Assembly: GCA_051530055.1 (NCBI GenBank)
Contig: CM121341.1
Location: 1,550,001 to 1,614,000 of the forward strand
Direction of reading: 5' to 3'
Length of the DNA: 64,000 nt
From: Neoechinorhynchus agilis
Taxonomy: Eukaryota; Animalia; Acanthocephala
Shown: positions 1 through 39,375 of the stretch, one piece after another
Layout of the letters: each line of letters starts with the position of its first letter
How positions within the stretch are numbered: the first letter of the stretch is position 1
The notes under the pieces: model-generated
Told to the model about the DNA's origin: nothing
The model's input: the letters and a program-made list of their open reading frames with translations, nothing else
The model's database searches: none
Translations under genes and position numbers: made by a program

Positions 1-3000
1 CAACAGATATTAAGATGCTGAATTCGATAAAGCGCATTTTGAGACGTTGCTGAAATGAGCGTTTTGACTAATGTTGACATGGAAGAAATCGGCAAATGAA
101 AAGTTGTATAAAGACACGCGTTTTTCTCATAAAAGTGTTCGAAAACAACATTGTCAATACGCCATCAGGAGAAAATCCGTTTGGTGATTGAGTTTCCGCT
201 GTTGTGATAATAATCCAGATTAGAATTTCTTTATTGAATCGAGGCATTTCAATAAAAAAATTTCAATCCTGGATTATGATCGCAACATCTCTGAATTCCC
301 ACAGAATTCAAAAGAAATTAAGATGCTGAATTCGAAAATACGCATCAAGTGACGTTGCTGAAATGGGCGTTTTGACTAATGTTGACATGGAAGAAATCGA
401 CAAATGAAAAGTTGTATAAAGACACGCGTTTTTCTCATAAAAGTGTTCGAAAACAACATTGTCAATATGCCATCAGGAGAAAATCCGTCTGGATGATTGA
501 GTTTTCGCTGATGTGATAATAATCCAGATTAGAATTTCTTTATTGAATCGAGGTATTTCAATAAAAAAATTTCAATCCTGGATTATGATCGCAACATCTC
601 TGAATTCCCACAGAATTCAAAAGAAATTAAGATGCTGAATTCGATAATGCGCATTTAGTGACGTTGCTGAAATGGGCGTTTTGACTAATGTTGACATGGA
701 AACAATCGACAAATGAAAAGTTCTATAAAGACACGCGTTTTTCTCATAAAAGTGTTCGAAAACAACATTGTCAATACGCCATGAGGAGAAAATCCGTTTG
801 GGTGATTGAGTTTTCGCTGTGGTGATAATAATCCAGATTAGAATTTCTTTATTGAATCGAGGTATTTCAATAAAAAAATTTCAATCCTGGATTATGATCG
901 CAACATCTCTGAATTCCCACAGAATTCAAAAGAAATTAAGATGCTGAATTCGAAAATACGCATCAAGTGACGTTGCTGAAATGGGCGTTTTGACTAATGT
1001 TGACATGGAAACAATCGACAAATGAAAAGTTCTATAAAGACACGCGTTTTTCTCATAAAAGTGTTCGAAAACAACATTGTCAATACGCCATCAGGAGAAA
1101 ATCCGTCTGGATGATTGAGTTTTCGCTGTTGTGATAATAATCCAGATTAGAATTTCTTTATTGAATCGAGGTATTTCAATAAAAAAAATTCAATCCTGGA
1201 TTATGATCGCAACATCTCTGAATTCCCACAGAATTCAAAAGAAATTAAGATGCTGAATTCGATAAAGCGCATTTAGTGACGTTGCTGAAATGGGCGTTTT
1301 GACTAATGTTGACATGGAAACAATCGACAAATGAAAAGTTCTATAAAGATACCCGTTTTTCTCATAAAAGTGTTCGAAAATAAGATTGTCAATAAGCCAT
1401 CAGGAGAAAATCCGTCTGGATAATTGAGTTTTCGCTGTTGTGATAATAATCCAGATTAGAATTTCTTTATTGAATCGAGGTATTTCAATAAAAAAAATTT
1501 CAATCCTGGATTATGATCGCAACATCTCTGAATTCCCACAGAATTGAAAAGAAATTAAGATGCTGAATTCGATAATGCGCATTTAGTGACGTTGCTGAAA
1601 TGGGCGTTTTGACTAATGTTGACATGGAAACAATCGACAAATGAAAAGTTCTATAAAGACACGCGTTTTTCTCATAAAAGTGTTCGAAAACAACATTGTC
1701 AATACGCCATCAGGAGAAAATCCGTTTGGGTGATTGAGTTTCCGCTGTTGTGATAATAATCTAGATTAGAATTTCATTGAATCGAGGTATTTCAATAAAA
1801 AAATTTCAATCCTGGATTATGATCGCAACATCTCTGAATTCCCACAGAATTCAAAAGAAATTAAGGTGCTGAATTCGAAAATACGCATCAAGTGACGTTG
1901 CTGAAATGGGCGTTTTGACTAATGTTGACATGTAAGAAATCGACAAATGAAAAGTTGTATAAAGACACGCGTTTTTCTCTTAAAAGTGTTCGAAAACAAC
2001 CTTGTCAACGAGTCATCAGGAGAAAATCCGTCTTGATGATTGAGTTTTCGCTGCGGTGATAATAATCCAGATTAGAATTTCTTTATTGAATCGAGGTATT
2101 TCAATAAAAGAAATTTCGATCCTGGATTATGATTGCAACATCCGCGAATTCCCACAGAATTTAAAAGAAATTAAGATGCTGAATTCGATAAAGCGCATTT
2201 TGTGACGTTGCTGAAATGGGCGTTTTGACTAATGTTGACATGGAAACAATCGACAAATGAAAAGTTCTATAAAGATACCCGTTTTTCTCATAAAAGTGTT
2301 CGAAAATAAGATTGTCAATAAGCCATCAGGAGAAAATCCGTCTGGATAATTGAGTTTTCGCTGTTGTGATAATAATCCAGATTAGAATTTCTTTATTGAA
2401 TCGAGGTATTTCAATAAAAAAAATTTCAATCCTGGATTATGATCGCAACATCTTTGAATTCCCACAGAATTGAAAAGTAATTAAGATGCTGAATTCGATA
2501 ATGCGCATTTAGTGACGTTGCTGAAATGGGCGTTTTGACTAATGTTGACATGGAAACAATCGACAAATGAAAAGTTCTATAAAGACACGCGTTTTTCTCA
2601 TAAAAGTGTTCGAAAACAACATTGTCAATACGCCATCAGGAGAAAATCCGTTTGGGTGATTGAGTTTCCGCTGTTGTGATAATAATCTAGATTAGAATTT
2701 CTTTATTGAATCGAGGTATTTCAATAAAAAAATTTCAATCCTGGATTATGATCGCAACATCTCTGAATTCCCACAGAATTCAAAAGAAATTATGATGCTG
2801 AATTCGAAAATACGCATCAAGTGACGTTGCTGAAATGGGCATTTTGACTAATGTTGACATGGAAGAAATCGACAAATGAAAAGTTCTATAAAGACAAGCG
2901 TTTTTCTCATAAAAGTGTTCGAAAACAACATTGTCAATACGCCATGAGGAGAAAATCCGTTTGGGTGATTGAGTTTTCGCTGCGGTGATAATAATCCAGA

Positions 3001-4582
3001 TTAGAATTTCTTTATTGAATCGAGGTATTTCAATAAAAAAATTTCAATCCTGGATTATGATCGCAACATCTCTGAATTCCCACAGAATTCAAAAGAAATT
3101 AAGATGCTGAATTCGATAAAGCGCATTTTGTGACGTTGCTGAAATGGGCGTTTTGACTAATGTTGACATGGAAGAAATCGACAAATGAAAAGTATAAAGA
3201 CACGCGTTTTTCTCATAAAAGTGTTCGAAAACAACATTGTCAATAAGCAGTCATCAGGAGAAAATCCGTTTGGGTGATTGAGTTTTCGCTGCGGTGATAA
3301 TAATCCAGATTAGAATTTCTTTATTGAATCGAGGTATTTAAATAAAAAAATTTCAATCCTGGATTATGATTGCAACATCCGCGAATTCCCACAGAATTTA
3401 AAAGAAATTAAAATGCTGAATTCGAAAATACGCATCAAGTGACGTTGCTGAAATGAGCGTTTTGACTAATGTTGACATGGAAACAATCGACAAATGAAAA
3501 GATCTATAAAGACACGCGTTTTTCTCATAAAAGTTTTCGAAAACAACCTTGTCAACGAGTCATCAGGATAAAATCCGTCTTGATGATTGAGTTTGCGATG
3601 TGGGGATAATAAACCAAAATAGAATTTCTTTATTGAATCGAGGTATTTCAATAAAAAAATTTCAATCCTGGATTATGATCGCAACATCTTTGAATTCCCA
3701 CAGAATTGAAAAGAAATTAAAATGCTGAATTCGAAAATACGCATCAAGTGACGTTGCTGAAATGAGCGTTTTGACTAATGTTGACATGGAAACAATCGAC
3801 AAATGAAAAGTTGTATAAAGACACGCGTTTTTCTCATAAAAGTTTTCGAAAATAACATTGCCAATAAGCCATCAGGAGAAAATCCGTTTGGGTGATTGAG
3901 TTTCCGCTGTTGTGATAATAATCCAGATTAGAATTTCTTTATTGAATCGAGGTATTTCAATAAAAAAAATTTCAATCCTGGATTATGATCGCAACATCTC
4001 TGAATTCCCACAGAATTCAAAAGAAATTAAGATGCTGAATTCGATAAAGCGCATTTTGTGACGTTGCTGAAATGGGCCTTCTTACTAATGTTGACATGGA
4101 AGAAATCGACAAATGAAAAGTATAAAGACACGCGTTTTTCTCATAAAAGTGTTTCAAAACAACATTGTCAATAAGCCATCAGGCGAAAATCCGTCTTGAT
4201 AATTGAGTTTGTGATGTGGTTATAATAATCCAGATTAGAATTTCTTTATTGAATCGAGGCATTTCAATAAAAGAAATTTCAATCCTGGATTATGATCGCA
4301 ACATCTCTGAATTCCAACAGAGTTCAAAAGATATTAAGATGCTGAATTCGATAAAGCGCATTTTGTGACGTTGCTGAAATGGGCCTTCTTACCAATGTTG
4401 ACATGGAAGAAATCGACAAATGAAAAGTTGTATAAAGACACGCGTTTTTCTCTTAAAAGTGTTCGAAAACAACCTTGTCAACGAGTCATCAGGAGAAAAT
4501 CCGTCTGGATAATTGAGTTTTCGATGTGGTGATAATAATCCAGATTAGAATTTCCTTATTAAATCGAGGTATTTCAATAAAA

Positions 4583-4717
4583 TGTCATATATCATTGTCC
4601 TCGGGGTGTGACAAACTTGCGAAACAATATCGACTGAAGAGGCAAGGAAAACCTTGTGAAATATTTCGAATATAAATGAGTAACGAAAGCACCGGGGGCA
4701 GGATTCGCCAACGCACA
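4583..4717 (+). mobile_element. 135-bp non-coding insertion in the satellite, flanked by a 12-bp target-site duplication and carrying a hammerhead ribozyme (retrozyme/PLE-derived-like)
   Basis: atttcaataaaa occurs at 4571-4582 and 4718-4729, whereas the normal unit has it once at this position. The insert is unrelated to the monomer. Confidence 0.85.
4627..4673 (+). ncRNA. Minimal type I hammerhead ribozyme
   Basis: Stem I ATATCGA(4627-33)/TCGA[A]TAT(4666-73); core CTGAAGA 4634-40 plus one extra G; stem II GCAAGG-AAAA-CCTTGT; GAAA 4658-61; then TA-T-T (AUU triplet, predicted cut after 4665). Confidence 0.8.
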
Positions 4718-7046
4718 ATTTCAATAAAAGATATTTCAATCCTGGATTATGATCGCAACATCTCTGAATTCCAACAGAATTCAAAAGAAATTAAGATGCT
4801 GAATTCGATAATGCGCATTTAGTGACGTTGCTGAAATGGGCGTTTTGACTAATGTTGACATGGAAACAATCGACAAATGAAAAGTTCTATAAAGACACGC
4901 GTTTTTCTCATAAAAGTGTTCGAAAACAACATTGTCAATACGCCATCAGGAGAAAATCCGTTTGGGTGATTGAGTTTCCGCTGTTGTGATAATAATCTAG
5001 ATTAGAATTTCTTTATTGAATCGAGGTATTTCAATAAAAAAATTCAATCCTGGATTATGATCGCAACATCTCTGAATTCCCACAGAATTCAAAAGAAATT
5101 AAGATGCTGAATTCGAAAAAACGCATCAAGTGGCGTTGCTTAAATGGGCGTTTTGACTAATGTTGACATGGAATAAATCCACAAATGAAAAGTTTTATAA
5201 AGACACGCGTTTTTCTCATAAGTGTTCGAAAACAGCATTGTCAATACGCCATCAGGAGAAAATCCGTTTGGGTGATTGAGTTTCCGCTGTTGTGATAATA
5301 ATCTAGATTAGAATTTCTTTATTGAATCGAGGTATTTCAATAAAAAAATTTCAATCCTGGATTATGATCGCAACCTCTCTGAATTCCCACAGAATTCAAA
5401 AGAAATTAAGATGCTGAATTCGAAAAAACGCATCAAGTGGCGTTGCTTAAATGGGCGTTTTGACTAATGTTGACATGGAAACAATCGACAAATGAAAAGT
5501 TCTATAAAGACACGCGTTTTTCTCATAAAAGTTTTCGAAAATAACATTGTCAATAAGCCATCAGAAGAAAATCCGTTTGGGTGATTGAGTTTGCGCTGTT
5601 GTGATAATAATCCAGATTAGAATTTCTTTATTGAATCGAGGTATTTCAATAAAAAAATTCAATCCTGGATTATGATCGCAACATCTCTGAATTCCCACAG
5701 AGTTCAAAAGATATTAAGATGCTGAATTCGAAAATAAGCATTTAGTGACGTTGCTGAAATGGGCGTTTTGACTAATGTTGACATGGAATAAATCGACAAA
5801 TGAAAAGTTTTATAAAGACACGCGTTTTTCTCATAAAAGTTTTCGAAAATAACATTGTCAATAAGCCATCAGGAGAAAATCCGTTTGGGTGATTGAGTTT
5901 GCGCTGGTGTTATAATAATCCAGATTAGAATTTCTTTATTGAATCGAGGTATTTCAATAAAAAAATTCAATCCTGGATTATGATCGCAACATCTCTGAAT
6001 TCCCACAGAATTCAAAAGAAATTAAAATGCTGAATTCGAAAATAAGCATTTAGTGACGTTGCTGAAATGGGCGTTTTGACTAATGTTGACATGGAATAAA
6101 TCGACAAATGAAAAGTTTTATAAAGACACGCGTTTTTCTCTTAAAAGTGTTCGAAAACAACCTGGTCAACGTGTCATCAGGAGAAAATCCGTTTGGGTGA
6201 TTGAGTTTGCGCTGTTGTGATAATAATCCAGATTAGAATTTCTTTATTGAATCGAGGCATTTCAATAAAAGAAATTTCAATCCTGGATTATGATCGCAAC
6301 ACCTCTGAATTCCAACAGAGTTCAAAAGAAATTAAGATGCTGAATTCGAAAATAAGCATTTTGAGACGTTGCTGAAATGAGCGTTTTGACTAATGTTGAC
6401 ATGGAAGAAATCGGCAAATGAAAAGTTGTATAAAGACACGCGTTTTTCTCATAAAAGTGTTCGAAAACAACATTGTCAATACGCCATCAGGATAAAATCC
6501 GTCTTGATGATTGAGTTTTCGCTGCGGTGATAATAATCGAATTAGAATTTCTTTATTGAATCGAGGCATTTCAATAAAGAAATTTCAATCCTGGATTATG
6601 ATTGCAACACCTCTGAATTCCAACAGGTTCAAAAGATATTAAGATGCTGAATTCGATAAAGCGCATTTTGAGACGTTGCTGAAATGAGCGTTTTGACTAA
6701 TGTTGACATGGAATAAATCGACAAATGAAAAGTTTTATAAAAACACGCGTTTTTCTCATAAAAGTGTTCGAAAACAACATTGTCAATAAGCCATCAGGAT
6801 AAAATCCGTCTTGATGATTGAGTTTGCGATGTGGGGATAATAAACCAAAATAGAATTTCTTTATTGAATCGAGGTATTTCAATAAAAAAATTTCAATCCT
6901 GGATTATGATTAATACATGTTGAAGGTTCACCCAGCCATTAAAAGAAAGTGTCGTCACGTGACAATTTCGATACGCGAAAGAAAGTCTGTTTATAAAAAT
7001 GAGTTACACGTGACGCTCTGAGGTTTGTTTATGCGAATGTTTTGAA

Positions 7047-13834: not shown

Positions 13835-16021
13835 TCAAACCGCAGTTCCATTACAGATCACATTGAGGTTATCACACGGTTCATATTTCTTGAATAACTT
13901 TAGATATGAGCAAATCACATACATAAGGCAAGCAGCGGCGAATTGACCGATCTTAACGCCAAATCGACAAGCAAAAGTGCTTGGTAGATCGATCTTTGCC
14001 AGAATTTGATCAGTGGAGAATTCACAGAACGAGAGTAAGAATGTTGCTAAGAGCCACGGGACAATTATGATTAAAGAGCTGATTGGTAGATCGAATCCAT
14101 ATGGGCATGGACTGTATGAAGCGGTTATCCATATGAAAGCGACGAAGAAACTCGCGAGTGCCGTTAGGATTTTGTGGGTTTGCCCGCTCATATGTGAGTA
14201 CAACGTGGATACGAGTGTTGCGAGTGGTGTTGTAAGTGGAATTAACATTGCTGCTACGTAGAAGAGATGGTCTCCATAGGGAAGGATTGAGTAGGTCATA
14301 AGAGCAGGTAAGACTCCAAACTTTAATACCGGCATAAGTTTGTTCAACAAAAACAATAATTGAAATTTTTCCGAAAGTGGTGGCTGCTTAACGATTGGTG
14401 GTGCTGGTTTTAAAACAAATATACTGTCTCTATAGTACCTGAGATCGAATTCGTCAACGTCGTCAGGATCAAATTCGTCTGTAGAAACAATACTTTGCCT
14501 GGCTACCATTCCGGATTTTAAAAGGTTTGTGAATCCAGCTAAACATGTCAGTGTGTAGGCTTCTATTGCAATAAATGAAATGAGTGATAGAAGAAGAGAT
14601 GCACCAATGACGAGCATAAAAGTCCTGAATGTCATGTGAGTTCGTGCGTATTGAGGAATGAGTGTTTGGTTGTTGTGAACGGTTGTGTTCATTGTACAGT
14701 TGATAAGCCCATGAGATCCTTGGATACCTGCCAATGCTGAGGGTATAAGCGCACCGAGCGAAACTCCCATAATGTGCGATACTTTGAGCGTTTGGCAATC
14801 AGCACGGCTTAAAGTTAATCGTATCATTCGAAAAAATAACTATTTTTAAAGAATAGTAGTAATTTTTCTTCTTCTACATTTATTTGTAGCATTTGAAAAC
14901 GAACTCAAAAGCTTAGTTCGATGAATGTTTTCAAATTTAGTTCATATGTCGCTACTATATCCACAACAATGCCTTTTCGTTTGGATCAAACAGGTCACTG
15001 ATAAGTCTTAAACGGTTCGCGTAAGCTATATGTTTTACTTTTAACAAAATTAGATTTACTGGTACTTTTTTGAAAATTAAAGAACTTTGAGCCATGAAAG
15101 AGCGATTTACGGAAACAAATATTCGGAACTTTAAGATTAAACTGAAATAATACCACTAGAATGTTTTCATTAGCTCCCATTCATGCGTCAATATTCAAAG
15201 AAGCACAAATAAAGTTGGACAAAACATTTTGTTCGTTTATTTTGCGATATTAGAAGAATCGAGTTTTTGTTGTTTTGTAATTTTTTAATCAAGCATTGCA
15301 TATGGAACGCAAATCTAGAATTGAATATCTTTCATTGATTTATTGAAGCTAAATAATAGAGCGTTGAACCTGCTAAAAAATGCACGGATAAGCCAATTGT
15401 TTCAAGAACGTTACAACACTTGAGTGCAAACCCTCGACTCCCCCAAAATACTCCACTGATTACCTGATTCTCAAAGTATTTGATATATTGCTCACATGAG
15501 TAAACCAGCGTTGTATCGGCGAATCCAACCAAAAAAACGCAGAAAACGACTGCGAATAGAAGGGTCTTGCTGCTGCCATCAAATGCCTGCAGCAGAATAA
15601 ATCCCATCGAAGAACAGGATGCTATTTGAGCAACGAGCATCACATAAACCAATGGAGATATCTCAGTTAGGAAAATCTTTCGAGCTGGTTCTTTAACTGC
15701 AATGTCGTCTGGGAAATTAACGACTCGCCTACGATTGCGCTGCCCTTCATTAGCTGTCCTTAGATCGTCCTTCTTCTCAACAACCGCATTTACTTTAAAT
15801 AGAGCCAAAAATGCCATAACGTTCGAAAGTTGGAGGATCATATTTATCAATGCAGGAAGGTCCCATTTGTCCGCAATGAATGATATGATAAATGGAAGCT
15901 CCACAAATATCGCATTTACACCCAATCCGTTGCAAATGGATAAAACGACAAACGCCAACCGATGAACAATCTCATTTGTTAACCGTTCTTTATTGTTGTT
16001 CATTTGTTTAATACCACTCAT
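13835..16021 (-). CDS. Riboflavin transporter, SLC52A family (probably 2 exons: 16021-15464, 14839-13835)
   Basis: NAIFVELP..WDLP...LQLSN in the first ORF; LIPSALAGIQG...C and SILPYG / SPCP motifs in the second. A CAG|GTAATC donor and a phase-0 AATAG acceptor join them in frame. The exact junction is uncertain. Confidence 0.8.
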
Positions 16022-16904
16022 TCTGGAGTTTGTAACTCCTTGTTATCTGAAAATTAAAGACAATAAATTTAAAATCTACGATTTATCACTAACGAAAATG
16101 ATGAAATATTTTCACGGGAAACTTTAATGGTCTTAGATAGCGCTTTATCGCTGTTGTTCAATGCGACGTAAAGCGTCACGTATAAATGTGGAGCTTTAAA
16201 AATTAATTTTGCTTTATTTTTTGGTTAGAATGTGGCTAAATTCGAAATTGGTCCAATATTAATACGTTTTATAATTCGATACTTTGCAGTACTTCAAGGG
16301 AAAACGCAACTAAAAAACAATCTCAAATTAGCTAAAACACTTTCAATAGGACGGAATCATTGGTTTTTTGATTACCTTTTTACAGACAATGATGTAGATA
16401 CACTATATATCCTCTTATTATTCGCTACAGTACCCCGGGCACCTTTTACTATCTGCACGCAAACAATTTCTGGATGCCACTGAATTACGCAAGTCACAAA
16501 TGGCTTGTAACACATAATAACGTATTTCTCCATTGGGAAAACGGCATTTGTACATCAATATTAATCTGGTTTCCATTGAAAAGACCAGTTCGTCCCTCAG
16601 TGTTAGGTAAAGTCTATTAAGTCCTTTAATAGCAAAGGTCCTTGTAGAAGTGTTATTTAGGTCTATTGGTTTATAAGTAATTAATGGCGAAATTCATCTC
16701 TTATTGTGTGGGATGCGAGATTTCTGTTGTATAAAAGACAAAAAAATCATAATATTCTTCGACTGATCGACAATTTATAGAGAGTTCATTTCACTACCGA
16801 AATAAATGAACCAAGAATATCAAATTTTAAAAAATAAAGATATAGCCCACTTTGGATTTTAAACTACTTTTACGGCGTCCATCGAGAGAGAGAGAAGTTT
16901 TTGG

Positions 16905-17309
16905 TCAAACTAAACAAGTAGCAAGCGAGACAATTTTCGCAAATCTCGCATCGTTTCTGAGGATTGTTGATACTGGACCGAAGATCCGCGTTCCTAATGG
17001 GTTCAGGTCTTTATCGACGAGTACGACGTTGTTTGTATCGAATCGAGGTCGGTTTTGTTTAGAGAAGTATCCCTTACATCCGACAATTACGGCTTTACAA
17101 GTTCTACCACGGACGGCCAGAAGGACAACATCGCCAGTACGACCGATCGATTGACGATTATAGACGTGAATGACGCAAGGTCTTCGTTTGTATAGCATTC
17201 CTTCAGTTGCGAGTTTGCTATTGTCCACAATGTTGACTGTGCTACGTCGGATGAGATGTCGGCATACTGAACTAGTTGAGAAAGTAGCACGTAAAACTAA
17301 AGCTGACAT
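16905..17309 (-). CDS. MRPL14: Mitochondrial ribosomal protein uL14m
   Basis: VDNS...PCVIHVY...[10 protein letters not shown]...KAVIVG...[12 protein letters not shown]...[10 protein letters not shown] motifs; N-terminal presequence-like segment; intronless. Confidence 0.92.
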
Positions 17310-17600
17310 CTATAATGTATTGAAAAAAGTCATGAACAAGTGTGGCAGACTAAAGCACTGCCAAGTTTACGACAAGGAATGTTAAAGAGCTTTCGGCGAC
17401 ATCGATTAAGTGACCAGGATTCACAAAGAAGACATGCGATGATCAAAATGATCCTACTTTAACACCGCCAAGATTAAAATCGCGGACGAAAATATAACTT
17501 TTATTTTAAAACCAAAAAAGATCCTACTGAGCAAAATGAATTTAAATAAAATCGAAAACAGTTTTTCGGTTTTTTAAGTGATTAAATCACCGCCAGTCAG

Positions 17601-17812
17601 GCACTCGGGTTGTTTGGTACCATGGCACAGGACCTGGTCAAGCAATTGTCTAAGAGATTGAGACGAATCATTGGCGATCCGAGATCAGGAGCACTCCTTC
17701 TACAAAACATAAGCCTGGCTCTTCAACGGGCTGGAAGGCTGCATCCGTACTCTGGACGATTACACCAGGACGCTCGTTGAGTGATCCAGAGCAGTGGCGT
17801 GAATGTTTGTAA
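17601..17812 (+). mobile_element. 3' tail fragment of a CRE-like retrotransposon (family F)
   Basis: Translates ALGLFGTMAQDLVKQLSKRLRRIIGDPRSGALLLQNISLALQRG/AASVLWT...*, the same C-terminal signature as the longer elements in the window. Confidence 0.75.
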
Positions 17813-18571
17813 GGTATAAACTACAAAAATGATGAAGAAAACTGGCATTGTAAAAAAATGTTGATTTATGGGAACTTTTAGACTGAGCCTGAGATTGGTA
17901 CTAAAATTCATTAGTTCTACTGTTAATTTAAAGAAGATTATATAAAAATCGGTAGCGAATGAAGCCGCGTGAATCCCAGTCGATTTACAGGTTGAACATT
18001 CAGGATGATAGTGGCGTTCCTGATGTTGAAAAGCGGGTGTTCCATTCAAAACGGGTTTTGCGCATTTATCACAGATCGGAACACGTCCAGTATCGTCAGC
18101 GGTGATCACAATTTTTTGACCGAGGAAATTTTCGATTTCAGGCGGTGCATGTTCACGACCAGAATGACCCATCGACATATGATGGCTGCAGTTGAGACAT
18201 TGAAATCGATTTTGGCCCAAATCCACGAATCGCATTCCATCATTAATCACAGCTTCACACCGATCACAAGTAAAGCATTGACTATGGAACCTAAGACCAT
18301 TATAACATTTCGCTCTAAGACCAGCTTGGATTTTCTGTCCACAAACAGCACAAACGGGACTTGTGGCATCATTGCATTGTTCACACATAAAGAGATTATC
18401 TCCTTTGGGATAAAAGGCAAGACCAGCTAGGCTCTTGTTGCATGATCGACATCGAAAACATTCGGGATGGTAATGAACGTCTTTATAAATTTGCATCGCT
18501 TCACCCCGCCTAAATCGTTGTTTACATATTCCGCACGAAATATCCAGGAATTGGCGGTTTCGGCTGTCCAT
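17723..18571 (-). CDS. LIM-domain protein (two complete LIM domains plus a truncated third)
   Basis: CGIC..HPECFRCRSC..CEQC; CAVC..HSQCFTCDRC..CLNC; the third, CDKC..HPECSTC, lacks its second zinc knuckle. ATG at 18571. The true 3' end is uncertain. Confidence 0.75.
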   Translation of the reverse strand: MDSRNRQFLDISCGICKQRFRRGEAMQIYKDVHYHPECFRCRSCNKSLAGLAFYPKGDNLFMCEQCNDATSPVCAVCGQKIQAGLRAKCYNGLRFHSQCFTCDRCEAVINDGMRFVDLGQNRFQCLNCSHHMSMGHSGREHAPPEIENFLGQKIVITADDTGRVPICDKCAKPVLNGTPAFQHQERHYHPECSTCKSTGIHAASFATDFYIIFFKLTVELMNFSTNLRLSLKVPINQHFFTMPVFFIIFVVYTLQTFTPLLWITQRASWCNRPEYGCSLPAR

Positions 18572-19364
18572 TCCGAATGGAGCGATTATTGGTGAGAAGA
18601 ATACAGTCAAAAAAAGAGTGTGAAGCTTTTTTTGGCTTGTATATCTGGCTGTTTATGTGTCGCGGTGACGAATCGGGGAGGAAAAGACTCGAAAATAGGC
18701 GACAGACACTCAGGTACGTACGGTAAAAGACAACCACGAATACTCAAGACGAGAAAGTAATCGATAGGGCGACATTCCAGAATGTACCGTGGTTTCTCTT
18801 AGAAAATAAATTAAAAGTCTAACGAAAATCGTACTCTCTTTTTTGCGGGGGGAATATTGGCAATCTAGGCGACGAAAATGAGCAAAAAATCCAAATAAAT
18901 TATAAAATTCAAGCAAAAATGTTCAATTTGAACGCCAAAAAACAATATCAAATGTTTACTGCGACGAAAATAATGGAACACAAGCAAAAAAATATGATTG
19001 CGCCATTTGTTTCGAGAGATTCAATCAAAATTTTAATCTAATGATAAAAAGTATTCCAAAAATTACAATCAAAATAAACAATTTTATTAAATGTATTTTG
19101 GAATAGGAAACTTATAATATTATAAACTATTGAGCTCTCAAAGTAGAACAGCTAAAAAAAATTAAAGTGAGTTAAATTAACAAATTAAACAGTACAAATC
19201 TTAAAAATAACAACTGAAAGAAATGTAGGCCTTTTAAAAAAAAGAAAAGCGAAAGACAGGAAAACCACAATTCGATTGACAGACTCACAGAAACGAACGA
19301 ATTTATAAAGATCTTATAACCAATCGTCATCGCGTCCGAAAAACAAGAAGTACGCCATTAAACG

Positions 19365-22300
19365 AGTTATTATATCCCGAATTTGGTTAAGGGGTAACTA
19401 CCGCGACGCCAGGACGTTGTGCTCTTTAAAAGAAACCATTTTATTAACCAAAAATCGAAGGCGACGATAAAACGGTTATAGAACCGAGACCTTTTCGGAA
19501 ATTCTATTAACCCAAAGAATACATTTTCTTGTAAAAGATAGCAAAAATTTAGTTGATTTCACTCTTGAAATGACAAAATTCTATCAGTGTTCGATGTGGA
19601 TCGCCATAAATGGCAAAAACATCAAGTTGTTATATCCCGAATTTGGTTAAGGGGTAACAATCGCTACGCCAGACGAGGACGTTGTGCTTTTAACATTTTA
19701 TACATCGAAGGTGCGTTGAGCCTTTTTCTATTCCGAATACTTTTTGTAAAAGATAAATTTAGTTGTCACTTGAATGCTCTATATGAAATCAATTTTATAT
19801 CGATTTGGGACTGCTACGCAGGACATCGACGGGACGTTGTGCTCTTTAAAAGAAACCATTTTATTAACCAAAAATCGAAGGCGACGATTTGGCAGTTGCG
19901 AAACCGAGACCTTTTCGGAAATTCTATTAACCCAAAGAATACATTTTCTTGTAAAAGATAGCAAAAATTTAGTTGATTTCACTCTTGAGATGACAAAATT
20001 CTATCAGTGTTCGATGTGGATCGCCATAAATGGCAAAAACATCAAGTTGTTATATCCCGAATTTGGTTAAGGGGTAACAATCGCTACGCCAGGACATCGA
20101 CGGGACGTTGTGCTCTTTAAAAGAAACCATTTTATTAACCAAAAATCGAAGGCGACGATTTGGCAGTTGCGAAACCGAGACCTTTTCGGAAATTCTATTA
20201 ACCCAAAGAATACATTTTCTTGTAAAAGATAGCAAAAATTTAGTTGATTTCACTCTTGAGATGACAAAATTCTATCAGTGTTCGATGTGGATCGCCATAA
20301 ATGGCAAAAACATCAAGTTGTTATATCCCGAATTTGGTTAAGGGGTAACAATCGCTACGCCAGGACATCGACGGGACGTTGTGCTCTTTAAAAGAAACCA
20401 TTTTATTAACCAAAAATCGAAGGCGACGATTTGGCAGTTGCGAAACCGAGACCTTTTCGGAAATTCTATTAACCCAAAGAATACATTTTCTTGTAAAAGA
20501 TAGCAAAAATTTAGTTGATTTCACTCTTGAGATGACAAAATTCTATCAGTGTTCGATGTGGATCGCCATAAATGGCAAAAACATCAAGTTGTTATATCCC
20601 GAATTTGGTTAAGGGGTAACAATCGCTACGCCAGGACATCGACGGGACGTTGTGCTCTTTAAAAGAAACCATTTTATTAACCAAAAATCGAAGGCGACGA
20701 TTTGGCAGTTGCGAAACCGAGACCTTTTCGGAAATTCTATTAACCCAAAGAATACATTTTCTTGTAAAAGATAGCAAAAATTTAGTTGATTTCACTCTTG
20801 AGATGACAAAATTCTATCAGTGTTCGATGTGGATCGCCATAAATGGCAAAAACATCAAGTTGTTATATCCCGAATTTGGTTAAGGGGTAACAATCGCTAC
20901 GCCAGGACATCGACGGGACGTTGTGCTCTTTAAAAGAAACCATTTTATTAACCAAAAATCGAAGGCGACGATTTGGCAGTTGCGAAACCGAGACCTTTTC
21001 GGAAATTCTATTAACCCAAAGAATACATTTTCTTGTAAAAGATAGCAAAAATTTAGTTGATTTCACTCTTGAGATGACAAAATTCTATCAGTGTTCGATG
21101 TGGATCGCCATAAATGGCAAAAACATCAAGTTGTTATATCCCGAATTTGGTTAAGGGGTAACAATCGCTACGCCAGGACATCGACGGGACGTTGTGCTCT
21201 TTAAAAGAAACCATTTTATTAACCAAAAATCGAAGGCGACGATTTGGCAGTTGCGAAACCGAGACCTTTTCGGAAATTCTATTAACCCAAAGAATACATT
21301 TTCTTGTAAAAGATAGCAAAAATTTAGTTGATTTCACTCTTGAGATGACAAAATTCTATCAGTGTTCGATGTGGATCGCCATAAATGGCAAAAACATCAA
21401 GTTGTTATATCCCGAATTTGGTTAAGGGGTAACAATCGCTACGCCAGGACATCGACGGGACGTTGTGCTCTTTAAAAGAAACCATTTTATTAACCAAAAA
21501 TCGAAGGCGACGATTTGGCAGTTGAAACCGAGACCTTTTCGGAAATTCTATTAACCCAAAGAATACATTTTCTTGTAAAAGATAGCAAAAATTTAGTTGA
21601 TTTCACTCTTGAGATGACAAAATTCTATCAGTGTTCGATGTGGATCGCCATAAATGGCAAAAACATCAAGTTGTTATATCCCGAATTTGGTTAAGGGGTA
21701 ACAATCGCTACGCCAGGACATCGACGGGACGTTGTGCTCTTTAAAAGAAACCATTTTATTAACCAAAAATCGAAGGCGACGATTTGGCAGTTGCGAAACC
21801 GAGACCTTTTCGGAAATTCTATTAACCCAAAGAATACATTTTCTTGTAAAAGATAGCAAAAATTTAGTTGATTTCACTCTTGAGATGACAAAATTCTATC
21901 AGTGTTCGATGTGGATCGCCATAAATGGCAAAAACATCAAGTTGTTATATCCCGAATTTGGTTAAGGGGTAACAATCGCTACGCCAGGACATCGACGGGA
22001 CGTTGTGCTCTTTAAAAGAAACCATTTTATTAACCAAAAATCGAAGGCGACGATTTGGCAGTTGCGAAACCGAGACCTTTTCGGAAATTCTATTAACCCA
22101 AAGAATACATTTTCTTGTAAAAGATAGCAAAAATTTAGTTGATTTCACTCTTGAGATGACAAAATTCTATCAGTGTTCGATGTGGATCGCCATAAATGGC
22201 AAAAACATCAAGTTGTTATATCCCGAATTTGGTTAAGGGGTAACAATCGCTACGCCAGGACATCGACGGGACGTTGTGCTCTTTAAAAGAAACCATTTTA

Positions 22301-23974
22301 TTAACCAAAAATCGAAGGCGACGATTTGGCAGTTGCGAAACCGAGACCTTTTCGGAAATTCTATTAACCCAAAGAATACATTTTCTTGTAAAAGATAGCA
22401 AAAATTTAGTTGATTTCACTCTTGAGATGACAAAATTCTATCAGTGTTCGATGTGGATCGCCATAAATGGCAAACATCAAGTTGTTATATCCCGAATTTG
22501 GTTAAGGGGTAACAATCGCTACGCCAGGACATCGACGGGACGTTGTGCTCTTTAAAAGAAACCATTTTATTAACCAAAAATCGAAGGCGACGATTTGGCA
22601 GTTGCGAAACCGAGACCTTTTCGGAAATTCTATTAACCCAAAGAATACATTTTCTTGTAAAAGATAGCAAAAATTTAGTTGATTTCACTCTTGAGATGAC
22701 AAAATTCTATCAGTGTTCGATGTGGATCGCCATAAATGGCAAAAACATCAAGTTGTTATATCCCGAATTTGGTTAAGGGGTAACAATCGCTACGCCAGGA
22801 CATCGACGGGACGTTGTGCTCTTTAAAAGAAACCATTTTATTAACCAAAAATCGAAGGCGACGATTTGGCAGTTGCGAAACCGAGACCTTTTCGGAAATT
22901 CTATTAACCCAAAGAATACATTTTCTTGTAAAAGATAGCAAAAATTTAGTTGATTTCACTCTTGAGATGACAAAATTCTATCAGTGTTCGATGTGGATCG
23001 CCATAAATGGCAAAAACATCAAGTTGTTATATCCCGAATTTGGTTAAGGGGTAACAATCGCTACGCCAGGACATCGACGGGACGTTGTGCTCTTTAAAAG
23101 AAACCATTTTATTAACCAAAAATCGAAGGCGACGATTTGGCAGTTGCGAAACCGAGACCTTTTCGGAAATTCTATTAACCCAAAGAATACATTTTCTTGT
23201 AAAAGATAGCAAAAATTTAGTTGATTTCACTCTGAGATGACAAAATTCTATCAGTGTTCGATGTGGATCGCCATAAATGGCAAAAACATCAAGTTGTTAT
23301 ATCCCGAATTTGGTTAAGGGGTAACAATCGCTACGCCAGGACATCGACGGGACGTTGTGCTCTTTAAAAGAAACCATTTTATTAACCAAAAATCGAAGGC
23401 GACGATTTGGCAGTTGCGAAACCGAGACCTTTTCGGAAATTCTATTAACCCAAAGAATACATTTTCTTGTAAAAGATAGCAAAAATTTAGTTGATTTCAC
23501 TCTTGAGATGACAAAATTCTATCAGTGTTCGATGTGGATCGCCATAAATGGCAAAAACATCAAGTTGTTATATCCCGAATTTGGTTAAGGGGTAACAATC
23601 GCTACGCCAGGACATCGACGGGACGTTGTGCTCTTTAAAAGAAACCATTTTATTAACCAAAAATCGAAGGCGACGATTTGGCAGTTGCGAAACCGAGACC
23701 TTTTCGGAAATTCTATTAACCCAAAGAATACATTTTCTTGTAAAAGATAGCAAAAATTTAGTTGATTTCACTCTTGAGATGACAAAATTCTATCAGTGTT
23801 CGATGTGGATCGCCATAAATGGCAAAAACATCAAGTTGTTATATCCCGAATTTGGTTAAGGGGTAACTATCGCTACGCCAGGACGTTTTGCTCTTTAAAA
23901 GAAACCATTTTATTAACCAAAAATCGAAGGCGACGATTAGGCTGTTGTAGAAACGAGGCCTTTTCGGAAATTCT
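19365..23974. repeat. Tandem satellite, 271-bp unit, ~17 copies, highly homogeneous; overlaps the 3' end of RPL5
   Basis: Identical ORF fragments recur every 271 bp (20050, 20321, 20592...). Terminal units are diverged, and one deletion-riddled unit lies at ~19680-19825. Confidence 0.97.
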
Positions 23975-24830
23975 CCATGACCTTCTGGACGCGGTGTTTA
24001 CGTTGTTTGAGATTAAGTCTTTTTCTATTAAATCTCTTTTGTTTTTCATAAACCTTCGTTGGTTTCTTCTCAAAGTCCGGATTCGAGCGTATTGCGGCAT
24101 GTGCCTTCTTATACATCTCTTCGATTCCATCCGGACTGATACCCTCTTTAATGTAATGAGAGAAATGCTTGTTATACTTATCTGGATCTTGCTTTTCAAG
24201 CAGACGCATATAATTTGCTACATGATGACCGAAGATTTGTCTTCGATGTGCTTCAGCATCATATGAACCTTTAGCATGGTCATAACCAAAATACCGTTTA
24301 TCGCTATGTGGTACATCGAGTCCTCCATCTACGGCTCCTTTCATAATACCGAATATTTTAACTCCGGTCACAGTACGAGCGAGACCAACGTCCAACACAG
24401 CACGAAACGCGTTTGGTCCTGTTTCAGCTTCTGGAATTTCAGCATCCTTTCCGTTACATTCATCAACGCCCGTGTACCGGCGATCGAGCCGCAATTTCTT
24501 TAGAAGACGACGAGCGACGAGTAGACCGACGCAGTAAGCAGCAGAATAGTTGGTTAGACCGACTCGGATGCCATAGCGTGTAAGTTCATGGGAATAGGCA
24601 GCACAGATAGTACGGTCCCCTTCAAGAGTGGCATAGATAACTTGAGCAACAATATCTTTGCTAGTGATCCGAGTTACTAGACGGTATTTGGGAGTCTGAT
24701 ATTTGTTTTTATCCTGATGAATAAGGCGACGACGAGCGTAGTAGTCGGTCTTTCCTTGCCGGCGGCGGCGAAACTTTACTTGAAAACGCTTGAAGTAAGC
24801 TTTGTTCTTAGTGACCTTCACAAATACCAT
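23937..24830 (-). CDS. RPL5: 60S ribosomal protein L5 (uL18)
   Basis: [36 protein letters not shown]...AYSHEL...[14 protein letters not shown]...GAVDGGL; 297 aa; intronless CDS. Confidence 0.99.
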
Positions 24831-25249
24831 CTATGGAAGCGATTGAGAAAAGTGGTAAGGGGAGCATCAAGGGCCGCCTTTTTCCCAAATCTAAACGAAA
24901 ACAACACGTAAAACTAAGAGCTTACCGTTGTCGAAGTTAGAAATTCGTTGCGGTTTGTTTTAAAAGATGCCGGCCCAAAATGAACTTTTAAAGCTACTTT
25001 TGAAGTCCGTGGACACAAATGAAAGGCAAGATTTGATTTGCACTCGAATAAGGACCTGCGTACGATGTTTGGCCAATGATAATGGCGAGTTCATCTAATT
25101 AGGGAAAAACTGAACGGTCCTTGCATCAACAATTGACGGAACCGGATCGCAACGCACTTAATCCAGACGAAACCTATGGACGCGAGCAGACAAAACGAAC
25201 TTTTCACATTTTAATGCCGCTAAAACACTTCAAAACTCCACGCGACTTT

Positions 25250-25292
25250 GTAGATTTCTGAAGAAGTCGTGAGACGGCGAAAACGCTCGGAA
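25250..25292 (+). ncRNA. Hammerhead-like motif (degenerate cleavage-site region)
   Basis: CTGAAGA (25258-64), an extra A, stem II GTCGT-GAG-ACGGC, then GAAA (25279-82). The downstream ACGCTC does not give a clean stem III/NUH. Confidence 0.5.
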
Positions 25293-25743
25293 ACAAAGAT
25301 TCTATCGTTACAAGAGGCCAAGTGTTAATTTTCGAGACCCCAAAGCTTAATCCTGCGACAGGAAAATAAAGGGTTGATTGAAATTGTAATCTATTGCTCC
25401 TTCAAGCGATGTCTCTAAAACAGAATTTTACCGTCGTTAATAAAACGAATTAAATTCGACTTTTTTTTCAGTGTTTCAATGGCCACTAAAAATAGAAACA
25501 AGACGCAATCTTCATGATCAATAATGGCAAAATCAAAAAACCATTTGCCAGCACTTGAGACCAAACAATTCCCAGGTTTTATTAAAAAAACCTTCACGCT
25601 AGAAGAGAACGATCGTTATACGGTCTAAAACAAAAAATTGGTGGATGAAAATACGACACGAGGAAGTAGGCAAAGCGCATGATGCGACGTTCGGGCACGA
25701 AAGAAAACAAGAGTATGGATCACTGTTTATTTAGAAACGACTG

Positions 25744-25786
25744 TGACGTCATTTTCTAAAAGGTGATTGGTTCGTATGTGACGTCA
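25744..25786. promoter_or_regulatory. Two TGACGTCA (CRE/ATF-type) palindromes flanking a reverse CCAAT box, in the divergent RPL5/C9orf78 intergenic region
   Basis: TGACGTCA at 25744-51 and 25779-86, with GATTGG between them. Confidence 0.45.
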
Positions 25787-26263
25787 TGTTCTCTTTATTT
25801 CTTTTCAGGACACAGCGATTTTCAAACCGAAAACCAACGCAGATTCACTCTTGCCGAAATTATCGACGTTTTTGACCCTTTTCATTATTTTGGAGCAAGA
25901 GTGCTTAATAATAACATATTTATTTGTTAATTAACAACGAAAAAGACCCATGTATCTTTGGGTCCTTGTGAACACTCGAATTCGCCGGAGAGAGTGAGTT
26001 TATTACTTCTTTAAGATTTGAGGAAAAAATTGTTTAGGCAAGTTTACTACGGTTCGTGGTAGAAATTGTTTTTGTTTTGATTTATTTGATTTTGGTTGAT
26101 TAAGTTGTTGGGTTGTTGTTTTTCGTTATTTCCTTCGAATCAATTCGCATTTGGAGGATTGAGCAATGGGGAAAAAGAATTGAGGTAAAGATTTGTGCGA
26201 GGAACTGAAGGATGGGAAATATTGGGGCGATTGCTTACATTGATTATTTTAGAAAGAGAAAGA

Positions 26264-36062: not shown

Positions 36063-36289
36063 AAGTTAAACATTCAACAATTTTTCCTAAAATTTAAGGG
36101 AAAATCGGGATCATCATTAGCTGCGAAATAATAAAAATTGCAAAATGTTAATAAATTGCACCTCTAATATTTTTAATAGGCAAATCAAAACTTATTAAAG
36201 CTAAAAAAAGATTTTGAAACGTTAGTTCTCCCAGATTATTCTCCTGTCGTTATTTTGACCAGTACAAAAAATGCCAGCACCAATAAAAC

Positions 36290-39200
36290 TGAAACTCTTA
36301 AGAATAGTTTCAAAATCTCAATATTAATTTTTTTGATCGTTTGCATTCCACATTTAAAGCAACTTTAGAGTCCAGTTTAATGTTCTTTTTAATTTATCAA
36401 CAAAGACTTTGTACATCATCTTCCAACGTCTTAGAGCACCGTTCAAACTTTAACTCTTAAAAATAGTTTCAAAATCTTAATATTAATTTTTTTGATCGTT
36501 TGCATTCTACATTTAAAGCAACTTTAGAGTCCAGTTTAATGTTATTTTTAATTTATCAACAAAGACTTTGTACATCATCTTCCAACGTCTTAGAGCACCG
36601 TTCAAACTTTAACTCTTAAAAATAGTTTCAAAATCTCAATATTAATTTTTTTATTATCTGCTTTCTACATTTAAAGCAACTTTAGAGTCCAGTTTAATGT
36701 TCTTTTAAGTTTATCCCCAACGACTTTGTACATCATCTGCCAATGTCTTAGAACACTGCTCAAACTTTAACTCTAAAATAGTCTCAAAATTTCAATATTT
36801 ATTTTTTTAATTATCTGCTTTCTACATTTAAAGCAACTAGAGTCCAGTTTAATGTTCTTTTTAATTTATCCCCAACGACTTTGTACATCATTTACCAATG
36901 TCTTAGAACACTGCTCAAACTTTAACTCTTAAGAATAGTCTCAAAATCTCAATATTAATTTTTTTGATCGTTTGCATTCTACATTTAAAGCAACTTTAGA
37001 GTCCAGTTAAATGTTCTTTTTAATTTATCCCCAAGGACTTTGTACATCATTTGCCAATGTCTTAGAACACTGCTCAAACTTTAACTCTTAAAAATAGTCT
37101 CAAAATCTCAATATTTATTTCTTTTAATTATCTGCTTTCTACATTTAAAGCAACTTTAGAGTCCAGTTAAATGTTTTTTTTAATTTATCTCCAACGACTT
37201 TGTACATCATTTACCAATGTCTTAGAACACTGCTCAAACTTTAACTCTTAAGAATAGTTTCAAAATCTCAATATTAATTTTTTTGATTGTTTGCATTCTA
37301 CATTTAAAGCAACTTTAGAGTCCAGTTTAATGTTCTTTTTAATTTATCCCCAACGACTTTGTACATCATTTACCAATGTCTTAGAACACTGCTCAAACTT
37401 TAACTCTTAAGAATAGTTTCAAAATCTCAATATTAATTTTTTTGATCGTTTGCATTCTACATTTAAAGCAACTTTAGAGTCCAGTTTAATGTTCTTTTTA
37501 ATTTATCAACAAAGACTTTGTACATCATCTTCCAACGTCTTAGAGCACCGTTCAAACTTTAACTCTTAAAAATAGTTTCAAAATCTCAATATTAATTTTT
37601 TTATTATCTGCTTTCTACATTTAAAGCAACTTTAGAGTCCAGTTTAATGTTTTTTTAAGTTTACCCCCAACGACTTTGTACATCATCTGCCAATGTCTTA
37701 GAACACTGCTCAAACTTTAACTCTTAAGAATAGTTTCAAAATCTTAATATTAATTTTTTTGATCGTTTGCATTCTACATTTAAAGCAACTTTAGAGTCCA
37801 GTTTAATGTTCTTTTTAATTTATCAACAACGACTTTGTACATCATCTTCCAATGTCTTAGAGCACTGCTCAAACTTTAACTCTTAAAAATAGTTTCAAAA
37901 TCTCAATATTAATTTTTTTATTATCTGCTTTCTACATTTAAAGCAACTTTAGAGTCCAGTTTAATGTTCTTTTAAGTTTATCCCCAACGACTTTGTACAT
38001 CATCTGCCAATGTCTTAGAGCACCGTTCAAACTTTAACTCTTAAGAATAGTTTCAAAATCTTAATATTAATTTTTTTGATCGTTTGCATTCTACATTTAA
38101 AGCAACTTTAGAGTCCAGTTTAATGTTCTTTTTAATTTATCTCCAACGACTTTGTACATCATCTTCCAATGTCTTAGAGCACTGCTCAAACTTTAACTCT
38201 TAAGAATAGTCTCAAAATCTCAATATTAATTTTTTAATTATTTGCATTCTACATTTAAAGCAACTTTAGAATCCAGTTAAATGTTCTTTTTAATTTATCC
38301 CCAACGACTTTGTACATCATTTACCAATGTCTTAGAACACTGCTCAAACTTTAACTCTTAAGAATAGTTTCAAAATCTCAATATTAATTTTTTAATTATT
38401 TGCATTCTACATTTAAAGCAACTTTAGAGTCCAGTTTAATGTTCTTTTTAATTTATCCCCAACGACTTTGTACATCATTTACCAATGTCTTAGAACACTG
38501 CTCAAACTTTAACTCTTAAAAATAGTTTCAAAATCTCAATATTAATTTTTTTAATTATCTGCTTTCTACATTTAAAGCAACTTTAGAGTCCAGTTTAATG
38601 TTCTTTTTAATTTATCCCCAACGACTTTGTACATCATCTGCCAATGTCTTAGAACACTGCTCAAACTTTAACTCTTAAGAATAGTTTCAAAATCTTAATA
38701 TTAATTTTTTTGATCGTTTGCATTCTACATTTAAAGCAACTTTAGAGTCCAGTTTAATGTTCTTTTTAATTTATCAACAAAGACTTTGTACATCATCTTC
38801 CAACGTCTTAGAGCACCGTTCAAACTTTAACTCTTAAAAATAGTTTCAAAATCTCAATATTAATTTTTTTATTATCTGCTTTCTACATTTAAAGCAACTT
38901 TAGAGTCCAGTTTAATGTTCTTTTAAGTTTACCCCCAACGACTTTGTACATCATCTGCCAATGTCTTAGAATACTGCTCAAACTTTAACTCTTAAAAATA
39001 GTCTCAAAATCTCAATATTTATTTCGTTTAATTATCTGCTTTCTACATTTAAAGCAACTTTAGAGTCCAGTTTAATGTTCTTTTTAATTTATCCCCAACG
39101 ACTTTGTACATCATCTTCCAATGTCTTAGAGCACTGCTCAAACTTTAACTCTTAAGAATAGTCTCAAAATCTCAATATTAATTTTTTAATTATTTGCATT

Positions 39201-39375
39201 CTACATTTAAAGCAACTTTAAGTCCAGTTAATGTTCTTTTTAATTTATCCCCAACGACTTTGTACATCATTGCCAATGTCTTAGAACACTGCTCAAACTT
39301 TAACTCTTAAGAATAGTTCAAAATCTCAATATTAATTTTTTTATCTTTGCTTTCTACATTTAAAGCAACTTTTTT
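36290..39375. repeat. Tandem satellite, ~158-bp unit, ~19 copies, two alternating subtypes
   Basis: ctcttaa(g/a)aatag recurs at 36295, 36454, 36613, 36771... Subtypes gatcgtttgcattc and attatctgctttc alternate. Confidence 0.96.

Follow-up and report, generated by a model that had tools for sequence, protein, structure and literature searches.

Several families of tandem repeats are known to derive from genes, among them the Stellate/Su(Ste) repeats of Drosophila and the satellites derived from 5S ribosomal DNA (rDNA), from rDNA spacers, and from tRNA; the Su(Ste) repeats are a source of small RNAs against Stellate. Tandem repeats are also known from the 3' ends of genes, as in the 40-bp variable number tandem repeat (VNTR) of the SLC6A3 3' untranslated region (3'UTR). 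Here we describe, from a window of 64,000 nucleotides (nt) of the acanthocephalan Neoechinorhynchus agilis (assembly GCA_051530055.1, contig CM121341.1 of 19,375,080 bp, positions 1,550,001 to 1,614,000; coordinates below are those of this window), a 271-bp head-to-tail array that spans 19365-23974 and lies behind the 3' end of the gene RPL5 (uL18). The gene is single copy and the monomer is multicopy, and each unit begins with a counterpart of the last nucleotides of the RPL5 coding sequence (CDS). We conclude that the array likely arose by in-place, DNA-level tandem amplification of a segment of ~260-271 bp that straddled the 3' end of the working gene.

Like the Stellate/Su(Ste) repeats and the 5S-, rDNA-spacer-, and tRNA-derived satellites, the RPL5 array appears to be a segment of a functional gene that became a concertedly evolving monomer, with a homogenised core and diverged edges. 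It differs from all of them in that its functional parent is still its first unit, and in that its unit starts within a CDS and carries a stop codon, a 3'UTR, and a poly(A) signal. It is also small. Classical satellites occupy tens of kilobases or more at several loci or in heterochromatin, whereas the RPL5 array, known here from one locus, measures ~4.6 kb as assembled and about twice that in the reads, for a true size of perhaps ~8 kb. The serial, identical AATAAA hexamers downstream of one gene recall tandem alternative polyadenylation in 3'UTRs, but the RPL5 signals past the first lie outside the transcript and arose by duplication of a 271-bp block, not within a UTR. Similarly, the array resembles the 3'-end VNTRs and minisatellites, of which SLC6A3 is an example, as a length-variable tandem repeat tied to the 3' end of a gene; VNTRs of the SLC6A3 type lie inside the mature mRNA, whereas the RPL5 array begins in the CDS and its later copies lie outside the mRNA. 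What is distinctive about this locus is an essential, highly expressed, single-copy parent that is still the first unit of the array and whose functional UTR has been drawn into the homogenisation of the array. A shallow search of the literature on exon-derived satellites found nothing closely comparable. The locus thus offers a clean and datable snapshot of repeat DNA apparently born from the end of a gene, with the parent still attached, essential, and expressed. The parent state can be read beside that of its descendants, and the far edge still preserves an old relic unit. With a functional 3'UTR overwritten and a coding tail spared, it is a natural test of how far conversion reaches into a gene, although it leaves our general knowledge of RPL5, polyadenylation, and satellites as it was.

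Between 19490 and 23959 we find 17 copies of the 16-nt anchor CCTTTTCGGAAATTCT at a spacing of 271 bp, with exceptions of 269, 269, 270, 260, and 420 bp, and Tandem Repeats Finder reports an array at 19813-23974 with a period of 271, 15.4 copies, and 99% matches. We cut the array at the anchors, turned the pieces to the sense of the gene (minus strand), aligned them, and numbered the units from U1 to U17 outward from the gene. The features of the gene end and of the array are as follows.

24830..23937, minus strand: RPL5 CDS, single exon, 297 amino acids (aa), stop codon TAA at 23939-23937 (open reading frame [ORF] list, Pfam, homologues, RNA and DNA depth).
23937..23974, minus strand: block common to gene and array, consisting of the last 11 codons, the stop codon, and 2 nt of the preceding Glu codon (unit alignment, three-way head comparison, tail orthology).
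23894..23936, minus strand: RPL5 3'UTR of 40-43 nt; AATAAA at 23914-23909, poly(A) site at 23897-23894 (RNA contig of run X3 with its poly(A) tail).
23715-23974, minus strand: U1, the gene-side unit, 260 bp, lacking an 11-nt block of the inner units and equal to the consensus over 23715-23867 (unit alignment).
19926-23714, minus strand: U2-U15, 14 homogenised units of 271 bp that all carry the AATAAA block and a junction of ttaatag followed by AGAATTTCC (Tandem Repeats Finder, anchors, alignment, read pile-up).
19506-19925, minus strand: U16, a composite of 420 bp in which a consensus head and tail flank a 149-bp relic unit (19673-19821).
19365-19505, minus strand: U17, the distal partial unit, columns 1-152, lacking the 11-nt block and with the head variant NFRKGLGSITVL; local alignment stops at 19365.

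A preliminary description of this window, made from the sequence alone, had proposed a 17-copy satellite of 271 bp at 19365-23974 whose terminal unit contains the last 38 nt of RPL5, its AATAAA, and the DNA downstream. The anchors and the unit alignment show that its coordinates and count were right, and the alignment confirms what the terminal unit contains. The 17 copies comprise the 14 homogenised units and three atypical ones, plus the relic. Among U2-U15 there are no substitutions at all, and the only differences are three deletions of 1-2 bp; the relic inside U16 is deletion-ridden, with 131 of 140 aligned pairs identical to the permuted consensus. AATAAA occurs 17 times in the sense of the gene, and the motif ttaatag stands 5' of the block in 16 units. 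The 11-nt block is present in all inner units and missing from U1 and U17, which share older states. The locus therefore has what is expected of a tandem array, namely a constant period, a near-identical core with diverged edges (U1, U17, and the U16 relic), and presence in independent reads.

The RPL5 protein carries the Pfam domains PF17144 and PF14204 and matches ~8000 RPL5 homologues. The last 38 nt of its CDS (23974-23937) align with the first 38 nt of every unit, and the homology continues through the 3'UTR and beyond. As had been described, GCC TAA of the gene corresponds to GCC AAA in the inner units; these also carry 7 more mismatches in the 38 nt, which had gone unmentioned and which reduce to 6 events once a 1-nt insertion and a compensating deletion are permitted. 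Translated in the frame of the gene, the inner units give NFRKGLGFATAKSSPSIFG and then a stop, U17 gives NFRKGLGSITVLSSPSIFG and then a stop, and the gene gives its own 11 codons and then a stop. U1 is continuous with the working parent gene, in that both DNA and RNA contigs run from the CDS into U1.

Comparison with other RPL5 proteins indicates that conservation of the RPL5 tail matches that of the remaining protein and that the array derives from the gene. P0004, the nearest RPL5 of the protein database (68% identical), has the tail EQFLKGLEATNA, in which 7 of the last 12 residues are identical and the end point is equal, and this tail is the best match among 119 homologues. Of the 119, 74 share the tail Phe, and the F-x-K-x-L tail motif, which is retained here, recurs across animals, for example as SFAKALVEANA in Owenia. 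Because the residues encoded by the shared block are orthologous to those of other RPL5 tails, the tail is ancestral RPL5 sequence and not a captured satellite. The preliminary description had favoured a gene-to-satellite origin from the normal 297-aa length and the conserved Phe; both particulars hold, and the tail orthology now supports the origin itself. The heads of the units lend further support. Their three types are arranged as a star around the gene, in which the ACA of the gene lies one step from the ATA of U17 and one step from the GCA of the inner units, and in which its TAA lies one step from both TTA and AAA (three-way head comparison). Since the codons of the gene are the central state, the ancestral monomer carried the RPL5 stop codon. 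The units lack an A-tail and extend ~180-190 nt beyond the poly(A) site, so that they are copies made at the DNA level and not retrocopies.

The gene-side unit records how far homogenisation has reached. Between U1 and the consensus, 8 of 38 coding positions differ, compared with 3 of 222 elsewhere (Fisher p = 1.2e-5), and the 222-nt noncoding part holds those 3 substitutions and one 11-nt indel. U1 is a mosaic, identical to the consensus over 23867-23715 and again from the stop codon to 23889. U1, U17, and the inner units agree at every position of columns 39-90, which cover the 3'UTR and the poly(A) signal, and differ in the parts that flank them; U17 has 0 differences from the inner units in these 52 nt and 13 in 89 flanking nt (~15% diverged). 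Within the CDS tail (23937-23974), no variant is listed at 10% of reads or more. The earlier suggestion that homogenisation of the array could convert the C terminus or stop codon of the gene is therefore borne out for the noncoding part of U1, which has been homogenised, and not for the coding 38 nt, with their 8 mismatches.

These observations are consistent with a history in which the starting segment took in 38 nt of CDS, a 3'UTR of 40-43 nt that includes the poly(A) signal, and a further ~180-190 nt of DNA downstream that is not transcribed. Unequal exchange or gene conversion would have kept and resized the array, and a recent burst or homogenisation would have left the inner units identical, with the 11-nt insertion, and U1, U17, and the relic with older states. 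The U16 relic may be older still than U1 and U17, the core having been repeatedly homogenised or reamplified by unequal exchange while the edges lagged, as is usual in such arrays. Exchange would have overwritten U1 up to about the stop codon, including the 3'UTR, the poly(A) signal, and the downstream DNA, and the last codons would have remained the gene's own. The head may have been spared because crossovers distal to it do not touch it, or because converted alleles (stop to Lys, 8 added residues, V>G, S>F, and T>A) were selected against. These two explanations are not mutually exclusive.

Reads and contigs were analysed over the stretch 23174-25800, with X8 denoting Illumina whole-genome shotgun (WGS) reads, X1 DNA contigs, and X2 and X3 RNA contigs; the RNA data take the form of contigs, from which rare isoforms and variants can drop out. 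RNA contig 17 of X3 covers 23894-24778 at a depth of 1108 and is adjoined by 23 T (plus strand), the poly(A) tail of a minus-strand mRNA. Cleavage accordingly falls at 23897-23894, 12-15 nt past the first AATAAA and inside U1. RNA depth over the CDS is 380-1100 overall and 383-657 in X2; over the inner units it is 0 in X3 and 3.8 in X2, where a single 301-nt contig accounts for it. This trace could be contaminating DNA, given the ~30 genomic copies of the monomer. The preliminary description had counted about 17 tandem candidate poly(A) signals behind the gene. All 17 AATAAA are present in the sequence, but a tail follows the first only, and the other 16 have no detectable use in the X2 and X3 contigs, from which rare forms may be lost. 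It had also read ttaatag as a possible splice acceptor; the motif precedes the block in 16 units, but no X2 or X3 joint links the gene to an inner unit and no internal donor of the CDS is in use, a weak negative given that contigs drop rare isoforms. Cleavage and polyadenylation of the RPL5 mRNA at the first signal, still within U1, leave the gene unaffected by the array, and the remaining array would be a silent or nearly silent spacer.

The reads show that the array and its linkage to the gene are real, and that the assembled array holds about half of the monomer DNA. X8 depth is ~18-20 over the gene and the region upstream of it, and the monomer pile-up rises to 350. Normalised to the single-copy depth and to the unit length of 271, the X8 depth summed over 23174-23877 corresponds to 27-29 unit equivalents, and the total X8 read count agrees with 27-29 units, so that double counting is not involved. 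In X1, a 59-nt monomer unitig has a word depth of 4100 (4808 with variants) against 117 for a single-copy contig, which corresponds to 35-41 copies. Illumina reads cross the unit junctions at a depth of ~250-350, and Logan contigs also carry the monomer and its head-to-tail junctions. The preliminary description had named read depth as a check on the true copy number and an assembly artefact as one outcome that would undo its reading. Read depth gives ~27-29 (X8) or 35-41 (X1) copies, compared with ~16 assembled, and the Illumina reads and Logan contigs show that the array was not invented by the assembly.

Several observations weigh against a simple in-place amplification at this one locus. 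One concerns the far end of the array, for which duplication of one segment should predict a stop at a unit boundary. The array does not end there. U17 stops at column 152, and the flank is unrelated to the unit: aligned with the unit tail, the flank beyond 19365 scores 19 against a shuffle mean of 19.5, no homology above shuffles. The out-of-phase end requires an extra event, which may have been a distal deletion or truncation, or an a-b-a origin, with two heads initially separated by the 119-nt tail as filler and the rest built by unequal exchange between those heads. The identity of columns 39-90 could reflect constraint rather than conversion. The remaining points come from the reads. The assembly contains ~16 unit equivalents at 95% identity or more, and the reads hold about 1.7-2.5 times more monomer DNA. 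A G>A variant at the equivalent unit positions 23507/23778 is carried by ~46% of X8 reads and ~48% of X1 depth and by no assembled inner unit, and a linked set of ~12 changes, found in 14-20% of reads, is also missing from the assembled inner units. Heads of the U17 type occur at 2-3 times the single-copy depth (58 loose-end reads in X8; a contig depth of 256 against 117 in X1), and the loose end of this type that the reads reveal has no second copy within the 64-kb window. There may thus be a second monomer block or locus. Collapse of the array in the assembly, a second block or locus, and differences between worms are all possible sources of the excess monomer and its variants, and the near-equal share of the main variant, 46-48%, in each of two separate DNA samples speaks more for a fixed second block than for chance polymorphism. 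For the published N. agilis assembly (PMC12690905), Nanopore and Illumina reads from ~50 pooled worms were combined with MaSuRCA into 46.2 Mb, with three major scaffolds. A pooled hybrid assembly of this kind makes both collapse and polymorphism plausible.

We weighed in-place amplification against four other explanations. An array or gene junction that is not real is scarcely credible. Such an error could arise in a hybrid Nanopore/Illumina build of ~50 pooled worms (PMC12690905), three of the units carry deletions of 1-2 bp like those of long-read errors, and the assembled copy number disagrees with the reads. The Illumina junction depth of ~250-350, the 301-nt contig that spans more than one unit, and the DNA and RNA contigs and reads that join the unique CDS to U1 nevertheless refute an artefact as far as the existence and linkage of the array are concerned, copy number and internal order excepted. 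Capture, in which a preexisting satellite would have replaced the 3' end of RPL5 and supplied its last 11 codons, stop codon, and poly(A) signal, would account for array ends that both fall at arbitrary unit phases and for reads that hold more monomer than the locus in the assembly. We consider it very improbable, given a tail that is orthologous to other RPL5 tails in its residues (7/12), end point, F-x-K-x-L motif, and normal 297-aa length, and given gene codons that are central among the three head types. An array of box C/D small nucleolar RNA (snoRNA) genes that carries the RPL5 piece as a passenger is less probable still. The suggestion comes from cmscan, which gives a weak hit to snoTBR5 on the minus strand (23475-23561 and 23746-23832), beginning at unit column 154. 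The match has 17.3 bits against a gathering score of 44 and E = 0.33 in a 901-nt search, and a canonical terminal box D is missing at the required place in a by-eye reading of the sequence. We discarded this subthreshold match as noise.

It is also unlikely that the array serves RPL5, whether as a fail-safe stack of terminators that shields the LIM-domain gene downstream on the same strand from the very high expression of RPL5 or, in the manner of Su(Ste), as a source of small RNAs against the RPL5 3'UTR. There are 17 intact AATAAA blocks, columns 39-90 are unchanged even in the diverged edge unit U17, the 301-nt inner-unit contig appears in X2 RNA at a depth of 3.8, and the downstream genes share the strand of RPL5, all of which would suit such a role. 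X3, however, has no RNA beyond the first poly(A) site, and the X2 signal is ~0.6-1% of gene depth and could be genomic DNA (~30 copies). Conversion tracts explain the conserved block equally well, and the three other, unrelated arrays in the window favour a neutral process. The monomer also lacks the marks of a structured RNA: the fold of one unit is not notable (z = -1.34), inverted repeats within the unit have only short arms of 9-12 nt, and Rfam finds no match in the whole window at the gathering threshold and, at E up to 1 on 23100-24000, only the subthreshold snoTBR5, with no hammerhead at either threshold. The public-record gene calls place no ORF within the array. A fuller version, in which the 3'UTR and poly(A) signal of RPL5 evolve in concert with the array, selection holds the homogenisation boundary at the stop codon, and the UTR block acts as stacked terminators or a small-RNA template, seems to us just as doubtful as the functional array. 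The array is real, ordinary in kind, and without sign of function, and in-place amplification at the end of a working RPL5 remains the explanation that we prefer. One ORF that can be found in the array begins with TTG.

The window holds three more tandem arrays, at 1-6910, 36286-39372, and 57670-59477, with periods of 309, 159/317, and 114 bp, and tandem arrays make up ~25% of its 64 kb. A blastn search of the monomer against the rest of the window (word size 7) returned chance matches of 16-23 nt only, including one of 20 nt to the 114-bp array, and by this comparison the 271-bp monomer is unrelated to the other three. The presence of three unrelated arrays favours a neutral tendency to amplify short segments in place. 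A rule that arrays sit at the 3' ends of genes was considered and dropped, as the 159-bp array of this window ends upstream of the 5' end of a gene.

The RPL5 gene of a second acanthocephalan, Pomphorhynchus laevis (L001 6001-13527), has introns, extends over 7.5 kb, and has no comparable array behind it; the species is too distant to date the event. The intronless RPL5 CDS described here and the intron-containing, 7.5-kb P. laevis gene represent a large structural difference between two acanthocephalans. The P. laevis gene has tandem and dispersed repeats of 114-356 bp of its own, in an intron of RPL5 and just downstream (L001 10488-11747 and 13908-14902). These repeats carry CTGATGA and CTGAAGA motifs adjoining GTTTCGCCCC, which gives them a hammerhead-like look, and they are unrelated to the 271-bp monomer. 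In N. agilis, single-base variants at ~40-55% of WGS reads occur at 24243, 24513, and 24597 in the RPL5 CDS and at 25110, 25451, and 25610 upstream of it, which indicates two common haplotypes or a pooled sample.

The 5' end of the RPL5 transcript and the genes that follow the array add two further features.

24831..24832, minus strand: splice acceptor AG directly 5' of the ATG, to which a 23-nt leader is joined (X3 contig with 23 loose letters behind 24830).
17723..18571, minus strand: LIM-domain protein gene, the next gene downstream, on the same strand as RPL5 (public-record gene calls, ORF list); the spacer between RPL5 and this gene is mostly array.

The mature RPL5 mRNA consists of the 23-nt leader (5'-GAATATTTAAAAACTTACAAGCA, mRNA sense), the CDS, and a very short 3'UTR, and the leader-bearing RNA contig has a depth of 250. 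The leader has 0 matches in the 64-kb window at 3 mismatches or fewer. Its attachment at the AG preceding the ATG is evidence, taken directly from a transcript, that this acanthocephalan uses spliced-leader trans-splicing; the papers found to mention both spliced leaders and acanthocephalans describe no spliced leader in this group. The ACTTAC..AAG core of the leader resembles the leader of bdelloid rotifers. The region upstream of the acceptor (24831-25550, minus strand) is transcribed at ~1% of the mRNA level, an X3 contig over 24801-25414 having a depth of 11.5 against 1108. RNA coverage runs out near 25550, and the region resembles an outron of ~700 nt.

On the minus strand, from ~13900 to 24830 (L002 10001-20894), RPL5, the LIM-domain gene, a ribosomal L14-family gene, and an SLC52-type transporter gene follow one another at close spacing. 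Given a trans-splicing organism, this same-strand series could be an operon-like cluster broken by the array.

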